NCBI GenBank assembly: GCA_001179505.1
Contig: CDMY01000200.1
Location: 105,801-169,800 of the forward strand
Direction of reading: 5' to 3'
From: Vitrella brassicaformis CCMP3155
Taxonomy: Eukaryota; Protista; Chromerida
DNA: 64,000 bases
The notes below the pieces were generated by a model, which saw only the letters and a program-made list of their open reading frames with translations, ran no database searches and was not told the origin of the DNA. Positions 979 to 53,050 of this stretch are shown one piece after another. The stretch's first letter is position 1. Each line of letters opens with the position of its first letter. The position numbers were made by a program, and so were the translations under genes.

Positions 979-3362
979 ATGTCTGAGTGTCACGACAGCC
1001 ACATGGCCTCGGCTGCCATGGCGGACGGTGACGGTGGCGATGCGGGTACGCCACACACAGATGAATGTGACACATCAAACACACAGCATCAGCGCCACAC
1101 GTGTGTGTGTGTCTTCGATGGTGTGCAGACGATGTGGCTGAGGAGGACAACAATGGCGGCGGGCAGCCAGACGGCCAAGACGACAATGACGCTGACAGTG
1201 GTGAGTCAACAGCACGCCACACAGACTGATCAGCACACCAGCAGCACAATCATGTTCGCGTTGTTGACGAATGTGTTGAAATGTCTTCGTTTCAGATTTG
1301 TCGCGAGAGGAGGACGGCGAGATGGCGGAGGAGGAGGGAGAAGGTCCACAGGCGGCAGCTGATAGCGAATCCGAATCGGTGAGTCACTCATTGACAGCAC
1401 CAACCGCCCCATGCGACGAGCGTCAGCAGTCTTTCTCACTCTTTCTCTTTGTTGTGGCAGGACGGTGTACAGGACGACAGTGATGACGACGGTGGGCCAC
1501 TGGGCGACGACATGGCTGACGACGACAACGACGGCATCGATGACGACGACTATAACGACGACGAAGCCGACCCCTATGAGGACGACGACGGCTATGAGGA
1601 GGACGGTACACCAGACAGACAGACAGTCAGACGCGAGAGGATGTGATCCTCACACACATTCCTTCACTGTGTGTGCCGTGTGGTGGCTGTGTGTGTGTGT
1701 TGCAGGCCATCCTGTGCTGGCGGCCACCACGGTTGAGGTGCCTGACGGCTGTGTGGGAGCCAACGACATCGAGGCTCGATTCCCCCTGGGCACCAACGAG
1801 GTCACCAAGCAGCTGGCATTGGGCGTCATCGGCCGTACCATCACCAGCCCCCAGCACGTGACCGACCTCATCGAGCAGGGTGCCGACCCCCATGTGGAGC
1901 CTCGACTGCGGCAGAAGGGCAGCGAGTGGGCTGGCGTTCCCTACTCGCTGGTCCATCTCGCCATCGACAACAGGTCGGGCTACACCGTCCCGACCATCGA
2001 CGCCGAAGACAATGATGATTGCCATTGCCGTCCCGTCGCCCTGCCACAGTGGTCGTCTGACGAGCTGCAGGCGGCCGTCCTGACCGCACTCCTCGACGGA
2101 GGAGCCGACCCCAATGCGGCAGCCGATCGGACCGGGGAGACGCCCCTCCGACTGGCGATTGCATCCGGCAATAAGACGGCATTCGAGCCGCTGATGGGTC
2201 GTCAAGACGTCGACCTGCACGCACAAGTCTTAGACGGCGCAGCAATGGTGATGGAGCTGCCGGTCCCCCTGCGTGACCCTCCTACTAACTTCCAAGAGGT
2301 GCTGCTGTCGATGTATCGTCAGCTCATCGAACGATACCCCACCATCGCTGCCGAACGACGCTTCGATGAAATGTGCACCTGGCAGCCATACAAGCGGAAG
2401 GGCGCTATCCCCAGCCCTTCATCGACAGCTACCTGGATCTCATCACGGCGAACGGGGCGGACATGACGGCAGCCGACGGCAACGGATGGACGCCACTGCA
2501 CCGGGCGGCAGGGTTTGGCTCCCCCCACGTGGCCGACTACCTCTGCCGCAAGCTGCCCGCTGACCAGATCAACAGACGGGACAACTACGGCGACATGCCC
2601 CTCGCCACAGCTGCCAGCAGCCTCGATATGCACACCCAAGAGCTGCAGAACCCGAACACACCCGAGCACATCAGGGAGCGGTATCGCGCCACGATTCCCA
2701 ACCACAAGCTGACCATCCGCAGCGTGCTGCGGGCGGGGGCCGACATCAGCACCATCCCCACAGCCACAGAGGGGGACTACCGTGGCCGCCAGCTGGTGCT
2801 GACCGAGTATGCCGGAGTGCTCAACGAGCTGCCCGCTGCCGTCATGGCGGCCGTCAACGCCGCCCTCGCCCCCCACCGCTCCCTCGCGGCCCTCCTGACC
2901 CCCCGGCTGGCCGTCGGCCCGCAGGAGGCCGCCATCTTCGGCTGGCGCATCGCGTCATACCTCTTCGACATGGATGCCGCCCAGGAGGCCATCAGTGAGG
3001 AGGCCGTCGGTGTGCGGCACAGCGACACGGCAGGGCGTGTGTGTGCGGCAGCCGAGCACTTTGTCAAGTCGGCAGTGTACCAGGCCAGCAGCAACAGGGA
3101 GGTGGTGGGCGGGACGAGGTATGAGCAGCAGAGCGACAAGCGGCTCAAGGTGACGGTGCCGCAGCTGCAGTGCTTTGTGGTGGGCGGTGTGGGTGGCCGC
3201 AAGATGGAGTTGCGTGAGGTGGTGCAGCGGGCCATCCTGGACGAGGCCGCAAAGTGGGGGCTGGTGGGGGACATCGACAACGGCTTCAGCAAGGATGTGG
3301 CTGCGGTGATGTGGGGGGCGGTGGGGTGGGTCGACAAGGGGCGGGACGGGAGGCAGACATAG
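979..3362 (+). pseudogene. Ankyrin-repeat family copy A (acidic N-tail exons + ankyrin repeats + constant C-terminal domain), frameshifted
   Basis: Phase-consistent exons 979-1045, 1129-1200, 1296-1378, 1461-1605 and 1706-3362. The main exon switches frame at ~2365-2375 (ORF 1411..2466 to ORF 2373..3362) where paralogues read continuously. The C-terminus is also shortened (GRQT*). Confidence 0.8.
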
Positions 3363-3811
3363 ACAGCTAAGGATGACATGAGACAGGCAAACAGATAGAT
3401 GAGGGCGGGCAGGCTGAGAGATTTCGATGTGTGTATGCGTGGCTGTTGCTCTTTGATCGATTGCTTCTGCTTCCTGCCTGCCGGTCCCTGATGTGTGTCA
3501 CCGGTGTATCAGGGAGGCAGACAGGCAGATGGGATGGGTGGAGAGATGTCATTGCTTACCTGCTGCCTGCATTTTTATCCTGACGTGTTGGTCTTGCATG
3601 TCGCTTCGTCCTTGCCCGTGAGTAAGTGCGGGAGACACGAAGCAAGCAGAGACTTGATGTATTGTCCCTTAAACTTCTTTGTATTCAAACGCACACCAAT
3701 GTCAATCAGACATCACACGCGCTCTTCCTGTCTAGGAGGCCCAAGAAGCACAAATCTTCATCATTTTGGGCCCACTCACACATAGCTACTTCAACAACAC
3801 TAAGAGACATA

Positions 3812-5110: not shown

Positions 5111-5145
<35 letters not shown>

Positions 5146-5266: not shown

Positions 5267-5608
5267 GCCGGAACTCCTCTGGGTGGGTCGGGGGAGGCCC
5301 TCTTCGTGCAGCTGCGCCCTGCCTCACATGGGCACTCTGCACACATTGGCAGCACTGCATGCATAGTGGCTCTTTCTGTCCTCTGCATTGCAAAATGGGC
5401 GCACCTTGCGGATGTCGTGGAGGAACCCCACATCGCTCGCCAGCAGGGGCGACCCTTCGAAACGAGGTCTACGAGCAGCCGTGTTCATCCCGCTCATCCT
5501 TTCAGAACCCTTTTGTGTTTACGACAGCGAGCTTTTTGACAATCCCTCCCTGGTTTCTCCCCAAGGGGGCTGTGCTTTGTCTGGGTAGATCTGCCACATT
5601 GACTTAAG

Positions 5609-7244
5609 ATGGAGCCCATCACGCTGGACGAGAACATCTGTTACTATGTGCTCATCCCCATCTTCATCGTCTGCATCATGGTCTCATTCCTCCGGCAGAA
5701 GATCCTCGTCGTCCTCAAAAGCGACACCAAAGTCGACCTCAAGGAAGTCAAAAACTCGTGAGCACACACACTCACCAACGCACCCACAAGAAGCAGCAGA
5801 GATCTCTCTCTCCTTGTGATGATGACGATGTGACACTGATGGTTGATGCTGCAGGCAGCTGCTGACACGTGCGAAGGTGCTGCGTGTCAATGCCGACTTT
5901 CTGCCAGAGAAGGCGTTCCGCTCGCGGAAGGCCTTCTTCAACAAGAAGGACACGGGCGCCTTCTGGAACCCACCTGACACACCAAACCCCCTGCAAGCTA
6001 TGGCCACACAAGGTGGGGGCGGATGAGATGAGACCAGCAGATAAGGCAAGGCCTGTAGTGTGGGTGTGGTTGCGGTTGTGGTTGTGGTTGTGGTTGTGGT
6101 GTGTGGTCAGATCCGACTCAGGTAATGGGCATGCTCAAGTCGCAGATGGCGTTTGTCATCCTCAACGGCGGGCTGGCCTACTGGGTCCACTTCCTCTTCT
6201 CGGGCTTCCTCGTCGGTAAGCTCCCTGCCTACCAGGTTGAACCAACAGAGAGAGAGAGAGAGAGAGAGATGGCCTGTAGTGCTGGACATGTCTGTCTGAG
6301 AGCTGCCTTATGTATGCTGTGGTGTGGTGTGGTGTGGTGTGTGTCGTGTCGTGTCGTGTCGGGTGGGCACACAGCCAAGGCGCCGTTCCCCCTGACCTAC
6401 AAGTTCAAGTTTATGCTGCAGCGGGGGGTGGACCTCAGCTCCCTTGACGTCACATACGTCTCCTCACTCTCATGGTCAGTCAGTCAGTTGGTTAGGTGCG
6501 GTGGCAGACAGACAGAGAGACGGAGAGAGCTGAGGAGGGACACTGTTGACTGACAGCTGCATGCCGTCTGTTGCCGGCCGGGCCGGTGTGGTCATCACTC
6601 ACATCAATCGATCAGGTACTTCTTCATCTTGTTTGCGTCGGGTGGGATCGTCTCGCTGCTGCTGAATCTGCGCGGCGCACGTAAGACAGGCAGGCAGTCG
6701 AACGTTCAACAGAAGGCGACTCGACTCACCATCATCTGTCTGTCTGTCTCGATGCGTGTGTGCGTGTGTGTGTGGCTGTGATGTGCACTGCAGCGCAGCA
6801 CGAGCAGGAGGCGCAGGACATCCAGGCGATGGACATGATCAACCCAATGATGGGCGGCATGGCCGGACCAAGTGAGCCGAGCTGAGCTGAGCTGAGCCGA
6901 GCCAGGCCAGCAGCATCAATCCCTCTCGTATGTGTGTGACATCCCGGTGTTGTGTTGTGTTGTGGGTGGTGTGTGTGTTCAGCTGCGATGCCTGGTATGC
7001 CAGGCTCCCAGCCTGACTTGAAGAAGGTCTATCAGCAGGAGAGAGACAACCTAGACATCGTGGTACGGTCGGTCAGCAACTCCACCCAGCCAGCCCAGCC
7101 ACACTCATATACACTTTTCACGCCAGCACGAGTGCAGTGTGTGGCTGTCTGTGGTCGGTATGTATGTGTCAGTCTCACGACTTTGCCTTGGCGACTGTCG
7201 AGCAGAGGCTGGTACAAAAGTGGACCAAGCAGAAGCAGCACTGA
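5609..7244 (+). CDS. EMC3: ER membrane protein complex subunit 3 (TMEM111), multi-exon
   Basis: [21 protein letters not shown]..., [42 protein letters not shown]... are diagnostic EMC3 segments. Stop TGA at 7242-7244. Confidence 0.93.
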
Positions 7245-7798
7245 TGCGATGCGTGTGAAGAGAGGTGTCGCTGGCTGGTGACAGTGTGACTGACGATTAA
7301 ATGAATGGCCGGCCTTTAGTCGGATGAAGAGAGCTTACTTAGGCACACACACACACAGGAAGGTACTAGGTGTCAGGGTCTATACAAGAGTCACACACCA
7401 CACCACACCACACACCATCCTCGCACACACAACACACGTCACACCAGGCACACCCACCCAGATAGATCGAATGGGCCGGGTGAAAAATCATCTCATCAAC
7501 AGCCAGCACCATGTCCATGTCCAACCATCGACGGCGTTAAAGCAACCATCGTCTCGTACCAACCCATACCAATAAAGCATTAAAATCCGTCCAGCCGTCC
7601 AGCCGTCCATCCATCCATCCATCTCTGCCTCTGATCGATCGCTTCATTGTCAGACCGCATCGGCCAGCCATTCATCCAACGCACCAGCTCCCAGCTCGTC
7701 TGCGTTCCTTATGCCGTAAGGAAGAGACGGAGGAGGCCACGAAAAACCCAGCAGCATCTCACGCGGCAAAAATGCGGTTTGGGGACCCGCCTGCCGCG

Positions 7799-10700: not shown

Positions 10701-13573
10701 AGGTTGCCCCACATCACCAGATCGCTGTTCAGGTCGCTGCTGTAGGTCTGCACCAAGGCAATCGATCGATGGATGGATGGATCTGTTGTGTGTGGCGGGG
10801 GGAGGGGCTGGGGGGGTACCTGGTGTGTGGTGATGTATTCCTGTGCGACGTATCTGGCGAGGTCGAGGGCGTTCACGGAGTTGGCGCCCTCCCCGCTGAT
10901 GGGATTGCGGACAAAACTGACCACACACAGACAGACACACAGAGAGCGAGAGAGTATGCCCCGGAGGACGCACCTCTCCACGCCATGCTCACTCACTCGT
11001 ATTTGATTTTGTCGTGGAAAGCGTCCCGATCGACCACATTGATGGCATCGGCAAGGGCACCCACACTCTGGTATAACCACACACACACAGAGAGAGACAG
11101 AGAGAGATGCACACAACACAAGACAAGACAAGCATAGCGTTGTGTCTTTCTGTCTTTGCAGACCTGGTGGAACTCCAGGAGTCGGTAGACGAGCTCGACG
11201 GCGATGGCCGTGTTGCCCACCTCGAAGGAACGAACAGCCTCCTGCACACCACACCACCACACAGGCACGCACACAACCAGGGTGTCGCAGGATGATAATG
11301 GGGGCTGGATGAAGACCCACACACAAGGGGCTGCCTGGCTGGGTGGTTGTCTGGGGTGGCTTGGCTCGGCTTACCGAATAGATCTGGAAGGCCTTTTCGT
11401 TGACCCTGTTCTTCAACTCAACGTCCATCCGCTCGGGCTGGATGCGCGCAGAACTGCGCCGCCATCACACAGACACACACCACACACACAGACAGCTCAG
11501 ACGCCGTCACTTCGGTCTGTCTGTGTGGCAGACTGACCTCTGCAGCTGTTTGGCCCTCAAGCCGACGTCGATGATGGAGGTGGTCCTGTTGCCGTACTCG
11601 TCGAGCAGAGACGTCATCGCACGGCGGAACCGGGGCAGCTGACCGACCCAACCACACACACACACACACGGACACCATCCATACAGGCAGGCATCACATC
11701 TCTGTATCTCTGTGTGGCTCACTCACGCCCTCACTCACTCACCGTGTAGGTCTGGATCTCCTCATTGACCGCATACCGATTCACCCTGACCAACACACAG
11801 ACACACAGACACACACACTCAGAAGAGCACGACAACATCATCACCCCCCCCCCCCCCCCCCCCCCNNNNNNNNNNNNNNNNNNNNNNNNNNNNNNNNNNN
11901 NNNNNNNNNNNNNNNNNNNNNNNNNNNNNNNNNNNNNNNNNNNNNNNNNNNNNNNNNNNNNNNNNNNNNNNNNNNNNNNNNNNNNNNNNNNNNNNNNNNN
12001 NNNNNNNNNNNNNNNNNNNNNNNNNNNNNNNNNNNNNNNNNNNNNNNNNNNNNNNNNNNNNNNNNNNNNNNNNNNNNNNNNNNNNNNNNNNNNNNNNNNN
12101 NNNNNNNNNNNNNNNNNNNNNNNNNNNNNNNNNNNNNNNNNNNNNNNNNNNNNNNNNNNNNNNNNCCCCCCCCCCCCCCCCCCCCGCAACTCCCCTACCC
12201 ACCCCAGGACATCGACAAGCGCGTCGATGAGCTGGTTGTCGTTGTCGGACAGGTCGATGTCGAGCTCGTTCAGCCCCCCAACAGTGTCAGTCGAAGTGGC
12301 CGCCATCGATGCCTCGTACAGCTCCTGGATCGTCGGCTGCTTCTTCTCCTCTTTGTCCTGCTTGGTCCCATCACCGGCAGCAGGGGCAGCAGCAGCCCCG
12401 GCGTACTGCCGCGCGACGATGTTGATGTCGTATTTCTCGATGTCAAGGTCGCGCCGCCTTCTCTCCGTCTCTGTCGACGAGCGGCGGAGGTGCCGAATGT
12501 CGAAGTTGATGATCTGGCTCAGCTGACACACACCACACACCACACACACGGAGAGAGACAGAGAGAGAGAATGGATGGGTCTCCCCTCCCACCACTCACA
12601 CACACACACACCCCCCTTCGGCAGAGCGTACCATGATCTCGAAGTGTTTGTTGTGCGTCTCCTCGATGATCTCGTCGCTCACGCCGAAAGCGGCGATCCA
12701 CTCGCCCAGCTCGTCGCGGAGCCTCTGGACCTTGTCATCTGTGAGGCTGTCCATCGACGGCAGCGGGGTGGTGGGGAACATCTCGTTGAGCACCTGCTCG
12801 TACGCGTCGGTCACCAGGCTCTTAAGACGGGCCTGACCGACCTTCTTCTTTATCTGACAGACAGACAAGTGACAGAGAGAGGCCGATGTGTGTGTGTGTG
12901 TGTGTTGGGGGGCGGGGGGAGGAGCGGAGCGGAGCGTGCCTGCAGGTCGCCGATGGTCTCGTCGACTGAGAACTGGTACATGTCTTTGCCGGCCTTGACC
13001 GAGTCGACGTCGCCCTCGACCTCCTCACTCTTGGCCTGTACACACACACACACAGCCCCGCCACCACAACACACACACACATGTGCAACGTACGTCGCAT
13101 GGCATGGATGAGCGTCTCTCTCTCTCTCTCTCTGTGTGCGTGTGTGTGTGACCAGGTTGTCGAAGAGGCAGTGTGCGAAGAAGATGTACTTGTCGAGGAT
13201 TCTGCCGCCGAAGGTGTTGGTCCCCAGGTGCTCCTCCGACTCGTACTCGACGACGGGAGAGCACAGCCGCCTGACCCTGCTGGATGTCTTGGCCATGATG
13301 TCGAGCAGCCTGTCCTGGTCGATGCCCAGCACGTCCCGCCAGTCGAGGAGCTCCAGCAACTCGCGGCGCATGCTGCCCCTGCACACATAATGGACACATC
13401 GATGGATGGATGGCCGTTGTTTTGTGTGGCGCGGTGCGGTGTGTGGTTTGTTCTGTTGTGTGGTTGCTTACCGTTTGCACATGCAGGCGTATAGGAGGAT
13501 GTCCCTGAAGATCTGGTCGCACAACTCGCGAGTTTGCCTGAACGAAGAAACCGACCGACAAGCCGCACGCACA

Positions 13574-13608
<35 letters not shown>

Positions 13609-15555: not shown

Positions 15556-18506
15556 ATGGGCAAGAAGAGCCGCAAGTTGGTGTTTCTTGACGTGCTGATC
15601 TCCGGCACTCCCGCCGGCCGCGTCGTCATCGAGCTGTTCAATGACATCACGCCCAAGACGTGCGAGAACTTCAGGTCTCGGGGCGGTCAAGAAGGGCGAG
15701 AGGGATGGATGGGTGGTCTCATGCGTGGCATGCATGTCTGTGTGTGTCTGCGTCTGTGTGTGGGTGTTGATTCAGGTGTCTGTGCACCGGCGAGATGGGC
15801 ACGGGGAAGGCCACCCGCCTCCCGCTCACCTTCAGGGGTGAGTGAGCAAAGCCAGAGCAGAGCAGGGGGCATGGACCTCACGTCACTCGTACGGACGGGT
15901 GTCTCTGACATCCCGGGGGGCTCCACATGTAAGTACGTGGTGTGGTGTGCGGTGTCCCGTTCCTTGCGCAGGGAGTCCCTTCCACCGCGTCATCAAGGGT
16001 TTCATGATGCAGGGCGGGGACTTCCAGAACAAAAACGGCACCGGCGGCGAGAGCATCTACGGCGGCAAGTTCCCGGATGAGAACTTCAAGGCCAACCACG
16101 ACAAACGAGGCCTACTCAGCATGGCCAATGCAGGTACCTAGGTGAAACGTGGCGGGGGTGGACGAGTGGACGAGTGGATGAGGAAGATGTGTGTGTGCGT
16201 GTGTGTGTGTGCGTGTGGTTCCACCGCTGTCTGTCGATATATCAGGTCCTGGCACCAACGGCAGCCAGTTCTTCATTACCTTCGCCCCGTGCCCCCATCT
16301 CGACGGGAAGCACGTGGTCTTCGGCCGCGTTGTGGATGGCTTCGACGTGCTAGACGCCGTGGAGCAGATACCCCCAGAGGCAGGCAGCAAAGACAAGTAA
16401 GTGACCAGCAGACCGACAGGCAGACACGACACCAGCCCACATACAGTCTCCATGCGCAAACTCTGTCTCTCTCTGGCAACTCACCAGGCCAAGCGAGCCC
16501 ATTATCATTCGCAAGTGTGGCGAGCTGGTCCTCAACCCCGATACAGCACCGGCAGCAGCACCGGCAGCAGCAGCAGCAGCAGCGGCCGTGCAGCAGCCAG
16601 AAGAGCAGCCAGAAGAGGCCGACCGCCGCTCCCCCCGCACCAAACCCGACAAGAAGAAGAACAAGAAGAAGCGCAAGAAGACCAAAGAAGAGTCAGACGA
16701 GAGTGAGTCCAGCAGTGACGAGAGCAGCAGCAGCAGCAGCGAGTCGTCGTCCGACGAGTCTTCTTCATCCGAGTCCTCCTCGTCGAGTGAGGAGGAGCGT
16801 CGCCGGAGGCGCAGGAAGCGCAAGGCTAGGGGGAAGAAGAGGCGGCGCAAGGACAAGGACAAGGAGAACGAGGAGAAGGACAAGAAGAAGAAGCACAAGC
16901 GGGGCAAGAAGGACAAGGACGACAAGGACGCCATGGCCGAGGATGACCTACCGGACAACAAGCACGTCGAGGAGCCCGCAGACCAGAAGGACAACAAGGA
17001 GCAGGAGGAGCCCGCCGTCAAGCCAGTGGAGATCATACACAAAGGCCGCACCCTCAAAGGCCGGGTCAGCTCGGCCGTGGCTAAGCCCACCCATACACAC
17101 ACACACAGCGACGGACGGCAACATGGCATTCCTCATTGCATTGCATGCCTTCTCAGGGTCACACTGTCTTCAGGAGCAGCCGCTTCGACCCGATCGAGGC
17201 ACCAGTCGACCCCTGGAAGGCCACAGACTGCCCCTACGACGACAGAGGCCGCAAACGACGCCCACCGCCACCAGTCGACAAAGCGGCCAAAGACAGTGCC
17301 GCCCACCCCCCTCCCGACCGAGAGCAGCCCCAGGTTCCTCCGCCCCACTCGGCCGCCGAGCGCCGTGACCACTACTACAGTGCCACATCTCGTGCTGAGC
17401 GTGAGGAGGATGTGCCCATGTACCCTCTGTATGGCGATGAGGAGGAGAGGGGCCGCAAGCGCGCCAGGCCCCGCCAGCAGATGACGGCGGACCGCTGGGG
17501 TGGTGGGCCCTCTCGCGAGGGCGAGGACACCACCGAGCAGATCCGGTTGCACGCCAAGGCCTCGGTCAAGAATGTCCTCGACCAGCACCCGGAGAGGGAG
17601 GGCGACAAGCGGGGGCCTGACGATCGGCCGAGAGAACCGCGACGCCAGGAGCGAGACGACCGTAGGGATGATGATCGGCGGGGCCCCTACGACCGCCCGC
17701 CGCCACGAGACGACAGGGGCCGTGACGTCGACTGGCGCGATAGGCGTGGCGGCTATGGGTCTCGACGTGACGACAGAGATCGCGAGTGGTATCGTGAGAG
17801 GCGCGAGGAGAGGGGGGACATGCGGCGTGGTGGGTATCGTGAGAGGGAGAGGGAGGAGAGGGACCGGCGCGAGAGGGGGCGGTGGATGGACGGGGGGGCT
17901 GACGGTGGAGACCGTCGACATCGAGACGATGAGGTGAGGTAACAACACAGCACACACACAGACGACACAAGAAACCCATTCCATGGACACCCCCTCGTCT
18001 GTCTGTCCCCTGCTCTTTCACGCAGCGTGACCGAGATCGTGAGCAGGACCGTTCTGACAAGGATGGCAGGCGCATACCAGACTATCGAGATCTGGAGGAG
18101 GTGAGGACATCAAGACCCCACTCGAACGAGCAAAGCAGCCAGCTAAGACACCTCCACTGCCTGTCTCTCCCTGCAGGATGATCGTGATCGCGGCCGTGAC
18201 CGACGCGAGGCTGACAGAGACCGCCCCCCAGGGGCTCGCGATGAGGACGACCGACGCACAAGGGACATCCGTCGGCGCGAGAGGGACGGGAGGCAGGAGG
18301 ATGGCGAGCTGAATGACGCCAACTCTAAGAAAGGAGGACAGCGTGATGATGATGGCGATCGCCCTGGTGAGGAGAGGAGCCCTGACAGCGGCGGCGTGAA
18401 GGGCGGCGGGAAGAAAAGGTCTCGATGGGACATGACAGCTCCCCGGAAGGACGACAGGGAGGGAGGGGGGGAGGGGAAGGGGGACAAGGAGTACGTGCCC
18501 GAGTGA
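15556..18506 (+). CDS. PPIG: Multidomain nuclear cyclophilin (PPIG/SRcyp/Moca type): PPIase domain + Lys/Ser/Glu-rich and RD/RE-rich tail
   Basis: FLDV…[35 protein letters not shown]…[36 protein letters not shown]…[13 protein letters not shown]. These are followed by poly-K, poly-S/E, KGRG and RD dipeptide exons. Stop at 18504-18506. Confidence 0.9.
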
Positions 18507-37774: not shown

Positions 37775-37935
37775 GCCTGCCTTCTGTGTATTCCCGTCTT
37801 TTTTTGGCTGGCTAAGTCGTTCATGTGTGTGGTTTGGGGGGTGTGTGTGTGCGTGTGTGCGGACCGTTTGCCGACACTTTGGCATGGAGCTACTGGATGA
37901 ATGGAATGAAAATTGGTTGACGCACAAAGCTCACA
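37775..37935. repeat. ~160-bp segment duplicated at ~42527-42690 (right edge of a tandem segmental duplication)
   Basis: CTTCTGTGTATTCCC.TC.TTTTTGGCTGGCTAAGTCGTTCATGTGTGTGGTTTGGGG…GTTTGCCGACACTTTGGC…CTGGATGAATGGA.TGAAAATTG.TTGACGCACA is present in both. Confidence 0.85.
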
Positions 37936-38411
37936 CACGCCCAGATTGCGTGAATGTGTGGGCAATCGATGCATGCAACAAATTGAGAAGCACCGTTGAA
38001 TGCAGGCACACACACGCCATGGCCATGAATCCATCCACATATTCGTGAGCGCATCCATCAGCCATATGCACAATGTAGGCACAGCCACGAGAGAGACACA
38101 GGAGGAGTCCCTCCACACGCACAACACACACGCACACAAACTGAACACCCTCCAGCAAGCCAGCGGGCTACCGTGTCAACCAAGTCACCTACAGGCAGCA
38201 GGTGAGGCGTCACTCGTGTGAATGAGTGAATGAACACACGATGACATCTCTCCACCTGTCTGTCTGTCTGTCTGTCCATTACCCGCCCGCCCCCCTCTCT
38301 CTGCAGCAACGCTTGTGTGCCACCCCGCCGCACCAACCATCGTGCCGGCCAACCAGAAAGCAGTCGATCAGGCGGCGACAACCATCCATCAATCCTTTCT
38401 AAAGCCCCCCC

Positions 38412-38711
38412 NNNNNNNNNNNNNNNNNNNNNNNNNNNNNNNNNNNNNNNNNNNNNNNNNNNNNNNNNNNNNNNNNNNNNNNNNNNNNNNNNNNNNNNNN
38501 NNNNNNNNNNNNNNNNNNNNNNNNNNNNNNNNNNNNNNNNNNNNNNNNNNNNNNNNNNNNNNNNNNNNNNNNNNNNNNNNNNNNNNNNNNNNNNNNNNNN
38601 NNNNNNNNNNNNNNNNNNNNNNNNNNNNNNNNNNNNNNNNNNNNNNNNNNNNNNNNNNNNNNNNNNNNNNNNNNNNNNNNNNNNNNNNNNNNNNNNNNNN
38701 NNNNNNNNNNN
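38412..38711. other. Assembly gap (300 N) flanked by poly-C
   Basis: Run of N with C tracts on both sides. Confidence 0.98.
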
Positions 38712-38814: not shown

Positions 38815-41248
38815 CTACTGGAATGCGGCCCCCAGCTGCTGCCATGTGAACTGGCAGTCGGCATCGCCCAGGTGGGCGTTGAAGCCCTTGACCACCGCCC
38901 CATCCGCCAGCCCCCACTTGGCCGCCTCGTCCAGCCTGGCCCGATGCACCACCTCACGCAAACCCACACGGCCATGAGTGTGCACCGCCTCACGCGGACG
39001 GCTGTCGTAGTTCAGCTCGAAGCACTGCAGCTGCGGGCGCCTCACCACCTGGCCCTCGCTGTCCCGCTTCCTACCCCCGTTGCCTACCACCTCCTCGTTG
39101 CCCACCACCTGCAGCGACGCTGCGGCCTCCACGAATCGCGCCATGGCGGTGTTGATGCGGCGACCGACCTCAGTCGCATTCTGCACGAAGCGGGGGCGCT
39201 GCTCGAGCACCGATGGGTCGACGAAGAATGACGCCACGCGCCACGCCACAGCCGACATGTCCCGGTTGGCCAGGGGCGTCTCGTCGTCCTGCCAGGGGGC
39301 CGCCGGGGTGACGTGGGGGGGCAGGGGAGGAGGGTGCAGGGAGTCGAGCGATGGGTCGAATGAGGGGAAGGCGGCCTTGAGCTGCTGAGCGGTGCCGTTG
39401 TGGAATGCCTTGGTCAGCGCGTCAGCTATCTCGCGAAGATCTCGCAGTGCGGCGTTGACGGCTGCCATGACGGCAGCGGGCAGCTCGTTCAGCACTGTGG
39501 CGTACTCCGTCAGGACCAGCTGGCGCTGATGGCGGTTCTCTTCTGTGGCTGTGGGGATGAGATTGATGTCGCCTCCCGCCCGCAGCAGGGAATGGATGAT
39601 CCGCTTGTACTTGTCACTCGCAGCGCGATGCCGATCCTTGGCATCCTCGGGTGTGTCGGGGAGCTGAAGCTGTTGGGTGTTGTCATCGAGCTCCTCGGCA
39701 GACAGGGCCAGGGGCGTCTTGTAGAATACGTTCAGTCTGTTGATCTGGTCAGCGGGCAGCTTGCGGCAGAGGTAGTCGGCCACTGGGGGAGAGCCATCCA
39801 GTGCCGCGAAGTGCAGTGGCGTCCATCTAATGCCGGCCTCTGCCGTCATGTCGGCCCCGTTCGCCGTGATGAGGTCGAGGTAGGCGTCGATGAACGACTG
39901 GGGATAGAGCCCTTTCGCCCGCTCGGCTGCCTGGTGCACCAGGTTGTAGTCATAGCGTTCTTCGGTGGCGAGGGTGGGGTCTCGTGTGATGAGTTGCCGA
40001 TACATCGACATGAGCACCTGCAGATACTCGGAGGGAGGCGGACGCAGGGCATAGGGCAGCTCCATCACCATGTGTGGGGATGATGCGCGCAGGTCGATGC
40101 CTTGACGAGCCATCAGTATGTGGAAGGCTATCTCGTTGCCGCATGCAATCGCCACTTGGATGGGGGTCTGTTGGGTCTCGTCAGCTGCCGCATTAATGTC
40201 TGCCCTTCCGTCGAGCAGTGCGGTCAGGACGGCCCTCTGCAGCTCATTCGACGACCACTGGGGCAGTGCGACGGGACGGAGGACAGCATAACCATCATCG
40301 TCTTCGGCTTCGATGGTCGGGACGGTGTAGTCCGACTTGTTGTCAATGGCGAGACACAAGAGTGGGTAGCCGTAGACGACACCACTGCTGTCCCTGCCCA
40401 CCAGCCCGGTCATGACACCCGGGTCGGCCCGCTGCTGCCGGATGAGGTCGGTCACTTCTCGGGCACTGGTGAAGCGGCGGCCAATGATCCACCGTGACAG
40501 CTCCCTGGTGGCGTCGCTGGTGCCTTCGGGGAAACGAGCCTCCAGCTCATCGAGCCCGAAATGGCCGTCCGGCACAGGGACAGTGGGATCTGCTAGGTCA
40601 CTGAGAGGATGACCTGCCACACACACAGCCACACAACGGGCAGTGATTGTGCGCGTGGGATCCTCTCTCGCGTCTGCCTGGCGTACCGTCACAGATATCG
40701 TCGGAGTCTCTGTCATCGATATCGTCATCTTGGTCATCATCGCCATCCTCGTCCTGCATGCCATCCTGACACACAACAAAAAGAGGCAGAGGGCGGAAAA
40801 TGACTCGAGGGCCTCCATCACATGGACCAGTGTTGGTGTCGATGAGTGCCTCACCGATTCGTCTCCATCGGCTGCCTGCGGACCATCATCACCGTCGGCC
40901 ATCTCATCGGCCATCGCGCCCTCCTGCTGCTGGCCGCCTGGGCACCAACACACACACACCCTCACTGACCCGGCGTGAGTGTGCTGCTTGTGTGTGTGTG
41001 CGTCGAATGGTCTGTGTGGCAGGTCTGGTCACTCACCGCTGTCTGCGCCATTGCGATCTGAGTCCTCCGCCTGTCCACTGCCGCTATGCTCCTCCTCTGC
41101 ACACACCATCGAAGGCACACACACACGTGTGGCGCTGATGCTGTGTGTTTGATGTGTCACATTCATCTGTGTGTGGCGTACCCGCATCGCCACCGTCACC
41201 GTCCGCCATGGCAGCGGAGGCCATGCGGCTGTCGTGACCTCCAGACAT
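38815..41248 (-). CDS. Ankyrin-repeat family copy C (intact) with a divergent C-terminal domain
   Basis: ORF 38815..40965 has the same ankyrin framework (YLDLITANGADMTA, VADYLCRKLPADQI). After MAAVNAAL the C-terminal region differs from the other copies. ATG 41248. Confidence 0.87.
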
Positions 41249-42347: not shown

Positions 42348-42963
42348 CCTAGCTGCCGAATTTGTGTGTCTGCTGCAATGATCAGGCTGCCGGTGGTGGT
42401 GGTGCACCCGAGCAGCCTCTAGTGAGCCCCACGTGGGCGGTCCACCAGTGATCGGGCAGAGGTGCGGCGATTGGTTGAGCCGGCAGCCAACCCGGAAGTC
42501 TCGCTTCAAGAGTGAGCAGATCTTCCTGCCTGTCTTCTGTGTATTCCCATCATTTTTTGGCTGGCTAAGTCGTTCATGTGTGTGGTTTGGGGTGTGGGTG
42601 TGTATGTGGGTGTGCTGAATGTTTGCCGACACTTTGGCCTGAAGCGACTGGATGAATGGAGTGAAAATTGATTGACGCACAGCAAGTCACACGAACGCAT
42701 AGACACCACAGTTCGCACAGCCCCTCCCTGTCTACTCAGATGGATCAAGATCGTCATGCAGATGACTACACATACATACAAAGGCAGCCCGAGGGAAACA
42801 CACAATGCGTCCACGGACGCCCTTCGTATACAAATAGAGACTTAAACCAGCACCAGGACCCCTCGTGGCACTAGACGTACCCACCCACCTGCAGTCAGTC
42901 ACTTCCCCTCCCTCCCTCGCTCCCTCCCTCTCTGTGCGTGTGTCTATGGCCGAATGCCGAGGC

Positions 42964-44830
42964 CTATGCAGCTACCACCTTCTGGTGGATAAGAGCAGCT
43001 GTCTGAGGGTACCGCTCATCTGGGCGGCGCTTCCGAGGAACGGGGCGCTCAGTGGTGCAGATCTTCAGGCCAAAGTCGACGCGGACCAGGAAATCATCGG
43101 CCGCCTTTTTCCCACACAGAATGAAGCGCGGCGCCTGCCACAGCACATTTGCCTCGTCGACCCGCCAGTAGGCCGCTTTGCGGCAGCCGTTCCACTCCCC
43201 CCTTGCGTGCAGCATGACGTCTTGGGTGAGCTGGTACTCGCTGGGAGGCGGATTGAGGAGGTCACTTGGGTGGGTGAAGTGGGGCCGCAGACGAAAGTCG
43301 TTCCCGTCCACGAAATGCGCGTCGATCAAAAAGACTATCAAGTCTGTGAAGGAAGAGTATACGTACCTGTCACCTGCAGACAGACAGCTGACATAAGGAA
43401 ACGGTTTGCACATTCAAACTGCTCTGCTCACATTTGGTTGGCGGGTCGGATTCGGTCAAATCGATGCTGACGTAGGTCAAGGGGTGTGTCAGTGATGAGG
43501 GTCCCACATAGTCCCGGCCGTTGACACAGCTCAGATCCACATGCTCGCGGATACGGTGACTGAATAGCGAGTACTGGCGCACCGCCGGGGGCCGCGTGTC
43601 GAAGACCGCCCGGCTGCCCACTTGCTGCAGCTCATGTGCCGTGATGGTGATGGGCAGAGAGGGGAGGAGGCGGCAGTTCCTGAGGTAGTGGATAAGCGAA
43701 ACACACCGGTCCCAGCGGCCGCCCTCCTCAATCACGTACAGCAGCCGCAACAGATAACTCGCCCTGGTGTCGGCCAGCCGCAGCACCAGCTCACTCCAGC
43801 GCAGATGGAGGAGATGGCATACAATGACCAGGCAGATGAGCGATAATAAGATGCAGGGCACTACCCATCTTGTGGCGACAATGATGAGTGGCGGGGTCAC
43901 GCCCAGCTGAAGCAGAAACCTCTTCCCGCTCGGGGACCGAAGCCATGCGATGCAGGTGCCAGGGGTGGCTGCAGAGCCGAGGAATAGCTTGCCGATCGAC
44001 AGCGCCACACGCAGCCCACTCACGACAGAGCGAGCGACGGACCACAGAAGGTCACATACGCCGTCCCTCGCCACCCAGAACTGCCTATACGCTCGCACGA
44101 CGAAGGATGCCTCCCCAAGCAATCGAATGGCCTCTGTGATCACAAAAACCGGGACCACCAATAAGAGTAGGAGAGAGTAGAGAGTCATGTAAAAAACTAC
44201 GATAGGCCTGTGAATCCAGTGAGGGAATCCAGCCAGCGGCTCCAGAAAGTCGGCCAGCCCACGGGTCATGACGAGGGTACAGAGGAGGATGGGCATATAA
44301 AGGACGACGAGAACGATCCCGCCCACGGCAATTGGAACGAGAAGGGAGACCGCGCTGAGAGTGGCCGTGATCCACTGCCGCAGAAGCAGCAGGACCGTCA
44401 CGCACCGCTTCTGGTACGTGAACACGCCAGTGAGGCCCTCCTCGCGAATGGCAGCATCGATGCGGTGCGTCAGGTAGGCCTCATTGACCAGCTGGCAGCC
44501 GACACTCTTGGACGAGGCGCGGAAGTGGCCACAATCCTCCGCCGTGAGAAAGGCCAGCAGTTGCCTCTCCACATCCTCGGGCAAGCCGACCAACCAACAC
44601 GCATTGGCGTCCGACTGATGTGGACAAACACACACACAGACCCGGCGCACGTGCGCAATGGATGCACGTGCGGTCATGTATGAGTGCCCACTCACCGGCG
44701 GTCTCCCTTCGCTCGTATACGCCTCGCTGTCCACCGGCTGCTGCAGACCCTGCATACACACGGCCAGCTGAACGTGCTGTTCGTGCTCGTGTTCGTCGTG
44801 CCCCACGGGCAATGTGTTGCGCACGGGCAT
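42964..44830 (-). CDS. Lineage-specific F-box-like protein with an internal multi-transmembrane block, 3 exons
   Basis: ORF 43370..44830 (LVGLPEDVERQLLAFLTAEDCGHFRASSK; several long hydrophobic helices; YLLRLLYVIEEGGRWDRC) splices to ORF 42964..43413. Confidence 0.72.
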
Positions 44831-45616
44831 CTGCCGCGACAGAGGATGGGTCAGAGGGCGTGCATCACTCGTGCATCATCACTCTCCCAGGTATCATCAC
44901 GCTCGACAGCCAGATCCGATCAGCCGCGTGCAATGCGCGTCAGATCTCCCTTCTCCACTCCGGAGAGAGCGGTTTCACGGAATGTCGACCCCTCCTCCCG
45001 GCCGGGAAGGAGGCGAACAGCAGACCTTCCTGAGAAGATATAAGACGACCAGCGGGTAAGGAGGCAAACGGAAGCGAGAAACATTCATTCGATTCATTCC
45101 TTCTATGGATCCGGACGTTATTCCTGACGTTAGGTTGCGCATGTCAGCCTTGACACGTTTTATGAGAGACCGACAGACTCTGCCTGCCGTTGCGCTATGA
45201 GTTAACTTGTCCGTCTATTCAGTCCACAAGTTGCTTGCTCAACCGATTCGCGTCTACACCACGCAGCCCGATGCATGCATCTTGAAAAGCAAGCTCCAAT
45301 AAGCAAAGGAACCCGTATGCACGCGCCTCTGCTCATACATGTACCATCCTTTCATCACGTTCCCTGCCCAAGACATACACTACTCTTGAAACACAGCACA
45401 CCAATGAATACACATACATACCTGCCCACATGGTGCACAGAGAAAGAGAGACACCTTCATGCCATTCACGGCTGCCTGGTCTTGTGCTGCGTCTGTCTGC
45501 CTATGCGTCTGTCAGCCATGTCATCCCTCCCTCCCTCCCTCCCACGCACGCAAAAATGGCATGCGCATACATACAGACAAACCTTTGCCATGGCAATGCA
45601 AAGCAATGCATGAGCC

Positions 45617-46972: not shown

Positions 46973-47456
46973 ACTTCAACCACTCACGAATGACGGAAAT
47001 GGAGAAATGCTCCGCCTCCATTCAGGTAGAGCACTCATTCATTCGTAATCGTGAAGCCGCCTTGACTCATCGGCTGCCTTACCCATCCTCCGCTCGTGAG
47101 TCACGTACGTTCTCTCCGGTGCGGCGGCAGCAGCTCCAGCGGCATACTGAGTGTGGTCAGAGCAGCTGCTCGACTCGGCTATAGCCGCTTTATACGACGG
47201 TGAGTGGTGGACGCGATTGACTCATCACGAGTCACCATGTGATTCGCTGCTTCTGTTGCCGCTATAATTGTGTTGTGCAGTCTGCCTTATCGGCGTGGCG
47301 GACCGATTGGCAATTTGCTCGTCTGTGTCCATAATTCGACACACAATAGGTGGGCAGGCACAGACACAAAGCTTCCACCAGGTGCATGTGCCCATCTGTC
47401 TCATGGCTCTCTCTCTATGTGGTGGATGCAGCTGCTAATTGGGGTGTGTTTGAGTG

Positions 47457-49732
47457 ATGTCTGAGCCTTACGGCATCGGCATGCCCTCTGCTGCCACGGC
47501 AGACGATGCCGACGGCGATGCAGGTACGCCACACACAAGTGCATCCCGCCACATGCGTTCATGTGGTTGTCGTTGTGCGGTTCATCGTGTCTGCAGGCGA
47601 CGTAGACGAGGAGGGGCATGGCGGCGGCGGGCCAGGAGAGGAAAACAATCGCAACGGCGTTGATGGTGAGTGACTGACCAATCATGCTATACAGACCAGT
47701 CGACACACCAGCAGCACAGCACACCCTATGTGCTCTCCGTCGGTGCGTCGCCTGTGTCTGTGGTCAGACGAGCAGCAGCAGGAGGAGGGCGGGATGGCCG
47801 ACGAGGAGCCAGACCCTCAAGCAGCAGCAGGAGCCGATAGCGAACCGGTGAGGCGCTTATGAACACACTCCCCGTCGATATGATGTCCGTCACGTTTTCC
47901 CTTGCCCTCTTGTGGTGTCGGGATGCCATGCAGGAGGCGGATGGTGCTGGCGACGCCAGTGAGGACTCATCCGACGACAGTGAGGTGGCGTACGAGGAGC
48001 ATGGTACGCCTGACAGACAGATGTGACAATGCTACACACACACACACTCGCTATGTACCTCCCTCGTGTGGTGGCTCTGTGCACTGCAGGTCATCCTGTG
48101 GTGGCGGCCACTGGCGTGACTGTCGCAGACGGCTGTGTGGGCGTCAATGACATCGAGGCTCGATTCCCTCTCGGCACCAACGAGGCCAGCAAGCAGCTGG
48201 GGCTGGGCATAATCGGCCGCACCATCATGGACCCACGCCAAGTGACCGACCTCATCCAGCAGGAAGGAGCCGACCCAGACGTCAAGCCTCGGCTGAGCGA
48301 CAAGGGCAGCAAGCGTCCTGGGTTCCGCTACCCGCTGCTCTGTCTCGCCATTGACAACCTGTCAGACAATGCGATATCGACCATCCAAGCAGACGACCGT
48401 CCCGCTGTCCTACCGCAGTGGTCGTCTGCTGGGCTGCAGGCGGAGATCCTCACCGCACTGCTCGACGGAGGAGCCGACATCAACACGCCAAGCTGGTTCT
48501 GGTCGGGGCCCCTCCAACTGGCAATTTCGGCAGGCAACGCGACGGCCTTCGAGCTGCTAATGGAGCGGCCCGACATCGGCCTGCAGGGGCACGGCGATAT
48601 GGAGCTGCCCCGTCCCCTGCGTGCGCCTCCCCTCGAGTATGTGCAGGTGCTCATGTCGATGTATGAGCGACTCATCACACGAGACCGCACCCTCGCAACC
48701 CAACGACTCTTTGGCTACAACCTGGTGCATCGAGCAGCCATGCGAGCGAAATGGCACTATCCCCAGTCCTTCATCGACAGCTACCTCGACCTCATCACGG
48801 CGAACGGGGCCGACATAACGGCAGCCGACGGCATTCGGCTGACGCCACTGCACTGGGCGGCACAGTGCGGCTCTCCCTACGTGGCCGACTACCTCTGCCG
48901 CAAGCTGCCCGCTGACAACATCGACAGACGGACAGTCTTCGACGACACGCCCCTCGCCATGGCTGCCGAGGAGCTCGATCGCCGCACTCAAGAGCTTCAG
49001 GACCTGGAGACGCCCGAGGCCACCAAGGAACGGCATCGCGCCGAGAGTGACAAGTACAAGCGGATCATCCGTTCGCTGCTGCGGGTGGGAGGCGACATCA
49101 GCAGCATCCCCACAGCCACAGAGGAGGTCCGCCGTCAGCGCCAGCTGGTGCTCACCGAGTATGCGACGGTGCTCAACGAGATGGGCCCTGCTGTCATGGC
49201 GGCCGTCAACGCCGCCCTCGCCCCCCACCGCTCCCTCGCGGCCCTCCTGGCCCCCCGGCTGGCTGTCGGCCCGCAGGAGGCCCCCATCTTCGGCTGGCGC
49301 ATCGCGTCATACCTCTTCGACATGGATGCCGCCAAGGAGCCCACCAGTGAGGCCATCGGTGTGCGGCACACCGACATGGCCCGCCGTGTGTGTGCGGCAG
49401 CGGAGCACTTTGTCAAGTCGGCAGTGTACCAGGCCAGCAGCAACAGGGAGGTGGTGGGCGGGACGAGGCATGAGCAGCAGGGCGACAAGCGGCTCAAGGT
49501 GACGGTGCCGCAGCTGCAGTGCTTTGTGGTGGGCGGTGTGGGCGGCCGCAAGATGGAGTTGCGTGAGGTGGTGCAGCGGGCCATCCTGGACGAGGCGGCC
49601 AAGTGGGGGCTGGCGAGGGAGATCGACAACGGCTTCAGCAAGGATGTGGCTGCGGTGGTGTGGGGGGCGGTGGGGTGGGTCGAGAGGGGGCGGGACGGCA
49701 GGGAGACATTCAGGTCGCTGCAGATGACGTGA
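47457..49732 (+). CDS. Ankyrin-repeat family copy D (intact, 5 exons)
   Basis: ATG 47457 (MSEPYGIGMPSAATADDADGDA), three acidic micro-exons, main exon from 48090 in ORF 48023..49732. Confidence 0.88.
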
Positions 49733-50739
49733 GATGCGGACATAGACAGGTTTGGGTGGCAGGGATGGGTGGACTTTGATGTGTGGATGGGACGGTTGTC
49801 GCCGTCTGACTCAGTCGAGTGCTTCCCTGTCGCGCGGCCCTAACATGTATATGTGCTAGATACTGCATTTCTGGCTGGACGGCTCGACACATGGGTGGGG
49901 GGTGGATGGATGGATGGATGGGCTGAGGTGGAGAGCTGTCACGATCATGTGTTCACTGACGCATCCACTGAGGTGCCACGTGAACGGACGAATGTGGTGG
50001 TGGTGGCTCACCTGATGCCTGCACGTCAATGGAGAGACGGCGGCTGCCTGGCTGGCGGACGGGTGGTGTGATGGTCTTGGAATTCATTGCCTTCTGCTGC
50101 TATTGCCTCGCTGTGTGGGCGTGTGTTGCTGTCTGACCTTTCGTCTGAGAGATTCTGCGTGCCCAATTACCTTGATCATTTGAAGGGCTTACACGACATT
50201 GGTGTGTGTGGGGGGGGGCATTTTGTCGACGAACTGGTGATACGAGTCGAGTTCGGTCGACAAGATGCATGCCAGACCACCTCCGTTCAGTCCTCCACTC
50301 ACTCCTTCATTGATAAAAGCGACAACGCTATGCACTCAGTGAATGAGTCTGACAAAGAAGTAATAGCGACCTTCACCCATTCGTCCATGGACGGATACAT
50401 TAGCAAAGCCATTCAAAGCCATTCAAACGCACTCTGTCCCCCTCCACGACCCACACACTGTCCACTCAGCATACGTCAACACAGCAGCTATCGATCCAGC
50501 AGCACTCACCACAGCATGATGAGGTCGCTGAGTGCTGTTGGATGACTGAGTGAGTGATGACAATAAAACATGCAAACACCCCAGCCAAGGGTGAAAAAAT
50601 GCCAAGATGGCACACAGGGAAGCTGCAAAGAAGCACTCAAATGAGTCAGGCAGCGACCACCATCCATCCCCACATCAAAATCACCCCACCTTGTCTGCCA
50701 CCACAATCAACCCTGCCCTCATCTATCTGTTTGCCTGTC

Positions 50740-53050
50740 TCATGTCATCCGCAGCAATTTGAATGTCTCCCTGCCGTCCCGCCCCCTCTCGGCCCACCCC
50801 ACCGCCCCCCACTCCACCGCAGCCACATCCTTGCTGAAGCCGTTGTCGATCTCCCCCGCCATCTCCCACTTGGCCGCCTCGTCCAGGATGGCCCGCTGCA
50901 CCACCTCACGCAACTCCATCTTGCGGCCACCCACACCGCCCACCACAAAGCACTGCAGCTGCGGCACACGCACCACATGGCCGCCCACATCGGCCGTCCC
51001 GCCCACCACCTCCCTGTTGCTGTTGATCTGGTACACTGCCGACTTGACGAAGTGCTCCGCTGCCGCACAGACTCGGCGGGCCATGTCGCTGTGCCGCACA
51101 CCGATGGCTTCACCGATGGCCTCCTGGGCGGCATCCATGTCGAAGAGGTATGAGGCGATGCGCCAGCCGAAGATGGGGGCCTCCTGCGGGCCGACGGCCA
51201 GCCGGGGGGTCAGGAGGGCCGCGAGGGAGCGGTGGGGGGCGAGGGCGGCGTTGACGGCGGCCATGACGGCAGTGGGCAGCTCGTTGAGCACTGCAGCGTA
51301 CTCGGTCAGCACCAGCTGGCGCTGACGGCGACGCCCCTCTATGGCCGCAGGAAGCCATAGAAAAGCAGAGCTGGTTGTGGTGATGCTGGTGATGTCGGCC
51401 CCGGTGATGTCGGCCCCCGCCCGCAGCAGCGTGCGGATGGTCATCTTGCGGTTGGCCATCTCGGCGTCGTCCTCATTCTGGGCCTGCAGGCGCTTATCGA
51501 GCTCGTAGGCAGCCCTGGCGAGGGGCGTGTCGCCGCCGTTTTCGGCCCGTCTGTCGATCTGGTCAGCGGGCAGCTTGCGGCAGAGGTAGTCGGCCACGTA
51601 GGGAGAGCCATACTCTGCCGCGTAGTGCATTGGCGTCTCCCCAAAGCCGGCATCGACTGCCGTCATGTCGGCGCCGTTCGCGGTGATGAGGTCCAGGTAG
51701 CTGTCGATGAAGGGCTGGGGATATTGCCCTCGCGTCAACATGGCTGCCGCGTCCACCAGGTTCTCGCCATAGCTTTCTTCGGTGGCGAGGGTGGGGTCTC
51801 GTGTGATGAGTCGCTCATACATCGACAGCAGCACCTGCAGATACTCGGCGGTGGGCTCACGCCGGGGACGGGGCAGCTGCAACACCATGTCTGTGCCGTC
51901 TGCTGCGCGCAGGTCAATGTCGTGACGAGCCACCAGCAGGAACACGTCAAATGCCCTTCGGTTGCCCAGTGCGATCGCCACCCACAAGGGCTTGCTGCAC
52001 TGTGGGTGAGCGTCTGTTGTGTTGATGTCGGCGCCTCCGTCGAGCAGTGCGGTGAGGATCTCCGCCTGCAGCCCATCTGACGACCACTTTGGCAGGGCCA
52101 CGAAAGCGCAAGCACCACTGCCTGCTGCATCGATGGTCATTACGCTGTAGGCCGTCTGGTTGTCAACGGCGAGACAGAGCAGTGAGTGGGCGAACCCATG
52201 ACGCTTGCTGCCCTTCTTCCGCAGCCGAGGCATGACATCTGGGTCGGCGCCGTCCTGCCGGATGAGGGCGGTCACTCGGTGTGGGTCGATGATGGTGCGG
52301 CCGATGACGCCCAATGCCAGCTGCTTTGTGGCCTCGTTGGTGCCGAGGGGGAAGCGCGCCTCGATGTCAGTGGGGCCCACACAGCCGTCAGGGACAGTCA
52401 CGCCAGTGGCCACCACCACATGGTGACCTGCAGTGCACAGCCACCACACGACGGAGGCACACAGTGAGTGTGTGTATAGCATTGTCACATCTGTCTGTCG
52501 TCGTCGGATGAGTCACCCTCCGCCTCACCATCATCACCATCCGCCTCCTGCATGGCATCCCGACACCACAAAGGGGCAAGCACAAACGTGACGGACATCG
52601 AATCGCATTGACTCGTGTTGTGTTCGTGAGTGATTGAATGAGTGCCTCACCGGTTCGCTCTCAGCTGCTGCTGCTCCTGCCTGTGCATTTCGCTCCTCGT
52701 CAGCCATCCCGCCCTGCTGCTGCTGCTGCTGCTGCTGCTCGTCTGACCGCAGACACAGGCGACGCACCGACAGAGAACACATGAGTGTGCTGTGCTGCTG
52801 GTGTGTCGACTGATCTGTGTGGCATGATCTGTCAGTTACTGACCATCGACGCCATTGCGATTGTCGTCCTCTGCTGGTCCGCCGCCGCCATGCCCCTCCT
52901 CGTCTACGTCGCCTGCAGACACAGTGAAACGCACGACCGCATGAAACGCATCATGTGGCGGGATGTATTTGGTTGTGGTGTACCTGCATCGCCATCGGCA
53001 TCGTCCGCCGTGGCAGCAGAGGGCACGCCGATGCCGTAAGACTCAGACAT
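50740..53050 (-). CDS. Ankyrin-repeat family copy E (intact, 5 exons), inverted sister of copy D
   Basis: ATG 53050 (MSESYGIGVPSAATADDADGDA), main exon in ORF 50740..52488. The upstream ~500 bp is homologous to that of D. Confidence 0.88.

Follow-up and report, generated by a model that had tools for sequence, protein, structure and literature searches.

Five related ankyrin-repeat genes, here called paralogues A to E, lie in the last 64 kb of contig CDMY01000200.1 of Vitrella brassicaformis CCMP3155 (the window, by which we mean this whole stretch of analysed DNA), and they raise the question of whether the positions at which they differ were pushed apart by selection on a binding surface or have simply been free to change. 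An earlier note on this DNA had described a fixed repeat framework on which the variable residues coincide with those randomised in designed ankyrin repeat proteins (DARPins), followed by a constant tail. We find that positive selection, and not mere tolerance of change, drives the variability of the binding positions, and that purifying selection acts on the framework of the repeats and on most of the C-terminal domain. The reading that we consider likely is that of an expressed family, found only in Vitrella, in which selection has diversified the ankyrin binding positions and whose members would recognise different ligands and share one activity of the tail.

In six-frame searches the motifs YLDLITANGAD(M/I)TA and SPxVADYLCRKLPA mark exactly five copies in the window, all where the earlier note had placed them, and both motifs are identical in A to E; tblastn found no sixth copy of the family in the 64-kb window. 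The strings that form the hairpin and helix 1 of the YLDLITANGAD repeat, and those of the repeat that follows it, are different in every copy and include hairpin insertions and deletions. Across 84 paralogues, the mean column entropy at the six DARPin positions (2, 3, 5, 13, 14 and 33) is 2.98 bits, compared with 1.69 bits in the outer helices, 1.22 bits in the helix-1 framework and 1.22-1.94 bits over the comparison classes (Mann-Whitney P = 6e-11), and the variation at the binding positions is not chance. Three consecutive repeats have their entropy peaks at positions 2, 3, 5, 10, 13 and 14, and the other repeats have theirs at the hairpins. The same pattern is seen at the codon level in 19 paralogues, where the pooled pairwise Nei-Gojobori (NG86) dN by repeat position matches the DARPin randomisation scheme: relative to the region-wide dS, dN/dS is 1.1-2.7 at positions 33, 1-5, 10, 13 and 14, and 0.2-0.8 at positions 6-9, 11, 12, 15 and 19. 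For repeats 5-7 this pooled estimate, which uses no tree, is 1.75 (bootstrap 1.18-2.62). In the selected columns Trp (6x), Phe, Arg, Tyr and His are over-represented, all residues that are typical of binding hot spots.

Codon site models were fitted to the 342 codons of the ankyrin region with our own maximum-likelihood implementation of the Goldman-Yang (GY94) model, whose M0 likelihood (-12102.29) equals that of IQ-TREE. Models that admit a class of positively selected sites fit far better than those that do not [M1a lnL -11595.13, M2a lnL -11431.64 with 10.8% of sites at omega 4.35, 2dlnL 327; M7 lnL -11588.07, M8a lnL -11562.50, M8 lnL -11424.00 with 11.8% of sites at omega 3.7, 2dlnL 328 for M8 against M7 and 277 for M8 against M8a. 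Omega is dN/dS and 2dlnL is twice the difference in log likelihood]. About half of the sites have an omega near 0.15, and a null simulation, converged with optimiser restarts, gave a 2dlnL of 0.03. Because recombination is real in the family, the comparison of M1a with M2a was repeated on segments with their own trees; recombination was handled by these segments and by the pairwise counts given above, and not by a formal breakpoint search. The signal is present in each segment of the solenoid [residues 4-120, 2dlnL 42.7; residues 121-204, 37.2; repeats 5-7 together, 213.9, with 16% of sites at omega 5.1] and in single repeats on their own trees (66.9, 57.2 and 58.3 for repeats 5, 6 and 7), and the C-terminal domain gives 31.5 with 6.7% of its sites. 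The fits to the whole region and to repeats 5-7 thus place 11-16% of sites at omega 4-5. The elevation of dN/dS at hairpin and helix-1 positions over other positions, which the earlier note had anticipated, is borne out.

The sites with a posterior above 0.95 in the fit to the whole region show where this selection has acted. They are positions 1, 3, 5, 10, 14 and 16 of repeat 5, positions 5, 10, 13 and 14 of repeat 6, and positions 3, 5, 10, 13 and 17 of repeat 7; elsewhere they comprise hairpin residues of repeats 2-4 and a few others, including 100, 103, 200 and 319. Residues 294, 297, 301 and 305 of repeat 7 recur with helical periodicity and would therefore line one face of a long inner helix (residue 305 reaches a posterior of 0.95 only in the fit to the segment of repeats 5-7), and residues 349, 353 and 363 show the same one-face periodicity on the first C-terminal helix.

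We also compared classes of sites that were set before any rate was seen, with the tree, kappa and the synonymous rate common to all classes. Omega is 1.60 for the 36 sites that make up the six DARPin positions of six repeats (2dlnL 40.1 and P = 2e-10 against omega = 1) and 2.26 for position 10 (6 sites; P = 4e-8 against omega = 1), compared with 0.51 in the outer helices, which are the helices 2 (94 sites), 0.27 in the helix-1 framework (42 sites) and 0.52 in the remainder (164 sites). For the convex face, a class defined by residue number was dropped because insertions blur the register of helix 2, and whole outer helices as defined by DSSP were used instead. High-posterior sites account for 14 of the 42 sites in the concave class and 13 of the 300 elsewhere (Fisher odds ratio 11, P = 1e-7), and for only 2 of the 94 outer-helix sites (odds ratio 23, P = 9e-7). 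The identification of the variable residues with the binding positions of DARPins holds for these preset positions (omega 1.6-2.3) as well as for the entropy contrast, and the variation is not also spread over the convex face.

Several points weigh against this reading. At the codon level the sample comprises 19 of the roughly 90 paralogues, ten further loci having been added, and in the site models the branch lengths were fixed up to one scale factor. About ten of the selected sites fall outside the predefined class (100, 103, 170, 171, 178, 200, 224, 301, 319 and others), and the assignment of a site to the concave face is made from the repeat register and established ankyrin geometry, not from measured solvent exposure. 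Whole-gene dN/dS is high (0.68-0.95, NG86) and one of the five copies is broken, and some members of the family may be decaying. Recombination among paralogues can also inflate tests based on site models.

The family has about 90 members, with 91 strong matches at E below 1e-38 in a search of protein databases. The closest database proteins to A-E all belong to Vitrella brassicaformis CCMP3155, every one of the 91 matches that bears an organism name is from Vitrella brassicaformis, and the rest are a few metagenome contigs and one MMETSP transcript. When 1.84 billion representative proteins were searched with a hidden Markov model (HMM) of the C-terminal domain, 79 matches were obtained, each named match that was checked was again from Vitrella, and the only others were a few environmental contigs, with no remote relative outside the genus. 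Judged from these searches, the family is found only in Vitrella. We found no paper that describes this family; the Vitrella genome paper mentions no ankyrin families or proteins, and, as far as titles and abstracts indicate, none of the papers found by a joint search for Vitrella and ankyrin appears to concern such a family.

All members share one plan, in which an acidic disordered N-terminus is followed by a seven-repeat ankyrin solenoid and then by a C-terminal domain of about 200 aa. At the gene level, several small exons encode the acidic low-complexity N-terminus, and one large exon opens at a conserved GHPV motif. Pfam Ank, Ank_2 and Ank_4 are above their gathering scores in all copies (in B-E, Ank_2 at 32-41 bits with a cut-off of 27.3 and Ank at 29-35 bits with a cut-off of 21.1), and no other Pfam domain is called. 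The acidic, disordered N-termini, which have no hydrophobic signal-like start, make an intracellular location plausible; no transmembrane helix is predicted, and the proteins are probably cytosolic. One database protein, P0002 (856 aa; locus L006, 14842-17867), consists of a C-terminal half and a full copy arranged head to tail, equivalent to 1.5 family members; this arrangement reflects either a partial duplication in tandem or the merging of gene models.

An AlphaFold2 (AF2) model of D without its acidic tail, built from the alignment of 84 paralogues, reaches a mean predicted local distance difference test (pLDDT) of 91.8 and a predicted template-modelling score (pTM) of 0.89. In this model residues 1-345 form the ankyrin solenoid, which Foldseek matches with a probability of 1.00 to ankyrin-1, AnkB, EHMT1, FEM1C and DARPins over about 350 residues. 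Seven repeats can be counted, with recognisable helix pairs in repeats 1, 3, 5, 6 and 7; repeat 2 carries a 25-residue insertion, and in repeat 4 an extended segment replaces helix 1. Residues 346-550 are modelled as a 46-residue helix, a helical bundle and a small beta sheet, and this C-terminal domain has a pLDDT of 87.8 when modelled alone. Its predicted structure has no recognisable known fold: Foldseek against the PDB gives no credible match (best E 0.3), VIA-align across the PDB reaches at best a Z of 7.6, to the generic helical bundle of Niban2, which is under the noise level that the tool states for helical proteins, the ESM Atlas (shape and features) gives a template-modelling (TM) score of at most 0.44, the viral structures of BFVD give no match, and the domain HMM has no match among PDB sequences at E up to 10.

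The five copies are not equally intact. Paralogue A (979-3362, forward strand), annotated as P0017 (635 aa), has small acidic 5' exons and a large exon from about 1705, and is likely a pseudogene, because its reading frame is broken within helix 1 of repeat 5 by a 4-nt deletion near 2366-2372. The public annotation covers this break with an intron; in our analyses A was read through the deletion with an unknown codon at the break. Paralogue B (33549-35881, reverse strand), identical to P0014 over exon 2, has its ankyrin domain at 34155-35201, including the hypervariable repeats 5-7 at 34155-34571, and its C-terminal domain at 33552-34154. Paralogue C (38815-41248, reverse strand) is identical to P0032, with the ankyrin domain at 39550-40614 (repeats 5-7 at 39550-39972) and the C-terminal domain at 38818-39549; its tail, which is of the majority type, is divergent from those of the other four copies and carries an insertion of about 55 aa. 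Paralogue D (47481-49732, forward strand; P0001, 634 aa) has 5' introns at 47347-47430, 47518-47592 and 47664-47767. The seven-repeat solenoid of D, delimited from the AF2 model and Foldseek, occupies 48089-49114 (model residues 4-345), repeats 5-7, the focus of positive selection with 16% of codons at omega 5.1, lie at 48692-49114, and the C-terminal domain lies at 49115-49729. Paralogue E (50740-53050, reverse strand; P0011, 644 aa) has introns at 52425-52527 and 52546-52650, the ankyrin domain at 51346-52428 (repeats 5-7 at 51346-51789) and the C-terminal domain at 50743-51345. The frameshift in A and the divergent, extended tail of C are corrections to the earlier note, which had taken the output domain to be constant; the similarity of the tail stands for A, B, D and E.

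The window contains two assembly gaps, at 11866-12165 and at 38412-38711, the second of which begins 104 nt downstream of the stop codon of C; both lie outside all five genes, and therefore no reading frame needs to be carried across a gap. The end of C resembles that of full-length relatives on other contigs. Paralogues D and E are transcribed and spliced, because contigs from runs X1 and X6 carry GT..AG joints at the three 5' introns of D and the two of E, whereas runs X3 and X4 have no spliced joints over this DNA and resemble DNA runs; these contigs show splicing but give no expression levels. Genes D and E are convergent, the 1-kb spacer that separates them (49784-50744) has full contig coverage in both splicing-positive runs, and the 3' untranslated regions of the two genes may overlap or abut.

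Recombination or gene conversion has reassorted or homogenised the two halves of these genes between paralogues. We conclude this because, in approximately unbiased (AU) tests, the ankyrin half and the C-terminal half each reject the tree of the other (P = 3e-7 and 8e-5), and because synonymous divergence varies along the gene, with low values at residues 184-303 and 364-513. Part of the likeness among the tails of A, B, D and E is due to concerted evolution, which further qualifies the constant tail of the earlier note.

The homology that copies share reaches about 250 bp beyond the gene on its upstream side and about 80 bp on its downstream side. Only the gene itself is duplicated, as a unit of about 2.7-3 kb with spliceosomal introns and without terminal repeats. 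The copies stand among housekeeping genes in both orientations, and some have spread within multi-gene segmental duplications. On the same contig such duplications involve 42561-44955 (reverse strand) and 36548-37926 of the window, and positions 5284-7787 and 15875-19420 of locus L008; family members were duplicated there alongside two other genes, one of about 500 aa without a Pfam match (window ORF, that is, open reading frame, 43370-44830) and one of about 441 aa. Two direct repeats of about 165 bp, 88% identical to each other (37773-37936 and 42526-42692, forward strand), bracket a 4.6-kb segment that holds C, and this segment looks like an insertion or the footprint of an unequal exchange, because it is missing from an otherwise collinear block in L008. 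A mobile-element or viral origin of the family was rejected, as homology does not extend far beyond the gene, its introns are removed by splicing, housekeeping genes surround the copies and BFVD gives no match. Similarly, in a comparison with ankyrin families borne by giant viruses or transposons, no viral or mobile context and no viral relatives of the tail were found in the flanks of the copies, among their neighbours or in BFVD.

How would such a family work? Positive selection has driven the paralogues apart at hairpin and inner-helix positions 2, 3, 5, 10, 13 and 14, mostly in repeats 5-7, with lesser diversification in the hairpins of repeats 2-4, and the two halves of the gene are exchanged between paralogues by recombination or gene conversion. 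In the mechanism that we favour, each paralogue would bind a different protein ligand in its ankyrin groove, and binding would be coupled to a single shared activity of the C-terminal domain, giving variable binders on a common module. The likeness to DARPins is that the framework is fixed and that hairpin and inner-helix positions 2, 3, 5, 13, 14 and 33 vary; the best Foldseek matches of the ankyrin part include DARPin chains. Unlike DARPins, the Vitrella proteins are a natural multigene family with seven dissimilar, partly degenerate repeats and long insertions in repeats 2 and 4; they vary as well at position 10, in the helix-1 extension (294/297/301/305) and in hairpin length, and they add an acidic N-terminus and a 200-aa tail.

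It is possible, and we hold it only tentatively, that these proteins are intracellular immune-like sensors of non-self, in which the groove would read fast-evolving proteins of viruses, bacteria or parasites and the tail would trigger a common defence. Site-specific positive selection on a binding surface is the signature of recognition receptors, the family is large, lineage-specific and clustered, and binder and tail modules recombine. The nearest described precedent for the selection pattern, by analogy, is the ankyrin domain of fungal NOD-like receptors (NLRs), in which positive selection acts on the same concave surface, at inner helices and hairpin loops (Dyrka et al. 2014, PMC4986451). 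These ankyrin sensors share with the Vitrella family the concave-surface selection, the large and fast-changing repertoire and the recombination (PMC4986451). They differ from it in that fungal NLRs shuffle near-identical repeats and change their number within a locus (PMC4986451), whereas the Vitrella genes diverge between paralogues at a fixed repeat number, and the Vitrella family lacks both a NACHT or NB-ARC nucleoside triphosphatase (NTPase) domain and a known N-terminal effector domain. Of the traits that define NLR and STAND proteins, the family thus has the repeat sensor under diversifying selection and not the NTPase: there is no Pfam match to a NACHT or NB-ARC P-loop NTPase at E up to 1, and the model contains no alpha/beta NTPase domain. 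Neither Pfam nor the fold searches with the C-terminal domain found a death-fold, TIR, nuclease or other known effector domain, which counts against a sensor of this kind, and non-immune conflicts and co-evolving endogenous partners give the same signature of selection.

Rather doubtful, in our estimate, is that the proteins are substrate or cargo adaptors, whose groove would pick endogenous or selfish-element proteins and whose tail would dock to a shared machine such as a ubiquitin ligase. Their plan of an N-terminal ankyrin binder followed by a conserved C-terminal module is that of ASB, FEM1 and the poxvirus ankyrin/PRANC proteins, and FEM1C is among the fold matches of the ankyrin part. 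The poxvirus ankyrin families are likewise multi-copy and fast-evolving. In addition, P0143, a distant Vitrella relative, carries the same C-terminal domain (hhalign probability 98.7%) behind a RING-like finger, and the segmentally duplicated L008 block that includes family members contains a RING-ubiquitin fusion gene, as well as a ubiquitin-only copy. However, the Vitrella family differs from ASB, FEM1 and PRANC proteins in having no detectable SOCS box, F-box or PRANC (no Pfam match at E up to 1) and, as its tail, a 200-aa domain of its own; the link to RING is one match just below threshold (26.0 bits, Pfam cut-off 27) in one distant paralogue, and gene neighbourhood is weak evidence in a eukaryotic genome.

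Ankyrin families are typical of the effector sets of symbionts, and the Vitrella proteins could in principle be secreted or host-directed effectors that manipulate a coral or another host, as the ankyrin effectors of bacterial symbionts do. Vitrella is coral-associated (PMC4501334), but we consider this explanation very unlikely, since the acidic low-complexity N-termini have no hydrophobic signal-like segment, and no transmembrane helix or secretion signal was seen. Most improbable of all is that no adaptive diversification took place and that relaxed constraint in a decaying family, alignment error at hairpin indels and gene-conversion artefacts together produced the pattern: the whole-gene dN/dS of 0.68-0.95, the frameshift in A, the demonstrated recombination and the hairpin indels speak for it, but an omega of 4-8 is impossible under relaxed constraint, positions 10, 13 and 14 are flanked by invariant residues that make their alignment unambiguous, about half of the sites are strongly constrained, D and E yield spliced transcripts, the null simulation carries no signal, and the signal is kept on single-repeat trees.

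Some further features of the window and of the other loci may be recorded here. A second multi-copy family with weak TLD-domain matches adjoins ankyrin members on two other contigs (L001, 1-521; L002, 13220-15686; L010, 4820-7482). The window has an ORF with a ZIP zinc-transporter domain (24609-25601, reverse strand), and a gene with cyclic nucleotide monophosphate (cNMP)-binding and weak ZIP matches lies near family members on another contig (L001, 20794-22361). An ORF at 60337-61530 (reverse strand), with an upstream part reaching to about 63994, matches the Helitron helicase-like N-terminal (Rep) domain (E 2e-42), and at 55949-56561, within a stretch of strong GC skew, there is a tandem array made of an 82-bp unit in 7.5 copies (84% matches) and also describable by a 163-bp unit.

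When diversifying selection acts on the binding surface of a family of repeat proteins, the family is usually the sign of a recognition system, as in plant and fungal NLRs and in the variable lymphocyte receptors (VLRs) of lampreys. Chromerid algae are the free-living sister lineage of the malaria and Toxoplasma parasites and the closest photosynthetic relatives of Apicomplexa, and we know of no innate-immune-like receptor repertoire described in this chromerid lineage. The preferred reading of a selection-diversified family of binders could be extended to an NLR-independent, ankyrin-based intracellular recognition repertoire of about 90 germline binders with recombined tails, signalling through the new C-terminal domain and possibly through the ubiquitin pathway, an extension that we regard as unlikely on present evidence. 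If true, such a recognition repertoire without NLRs would represent an innate immune or conflict system of a new type, so far found only in Vitrella. The tail domain that is confined to this alga may offer a route to a new signalling or adaptor module, and the family as a whole would be a natural counterpart of the DARPin design principle, with some 90 evolved ankyrin binders on one scaffold.

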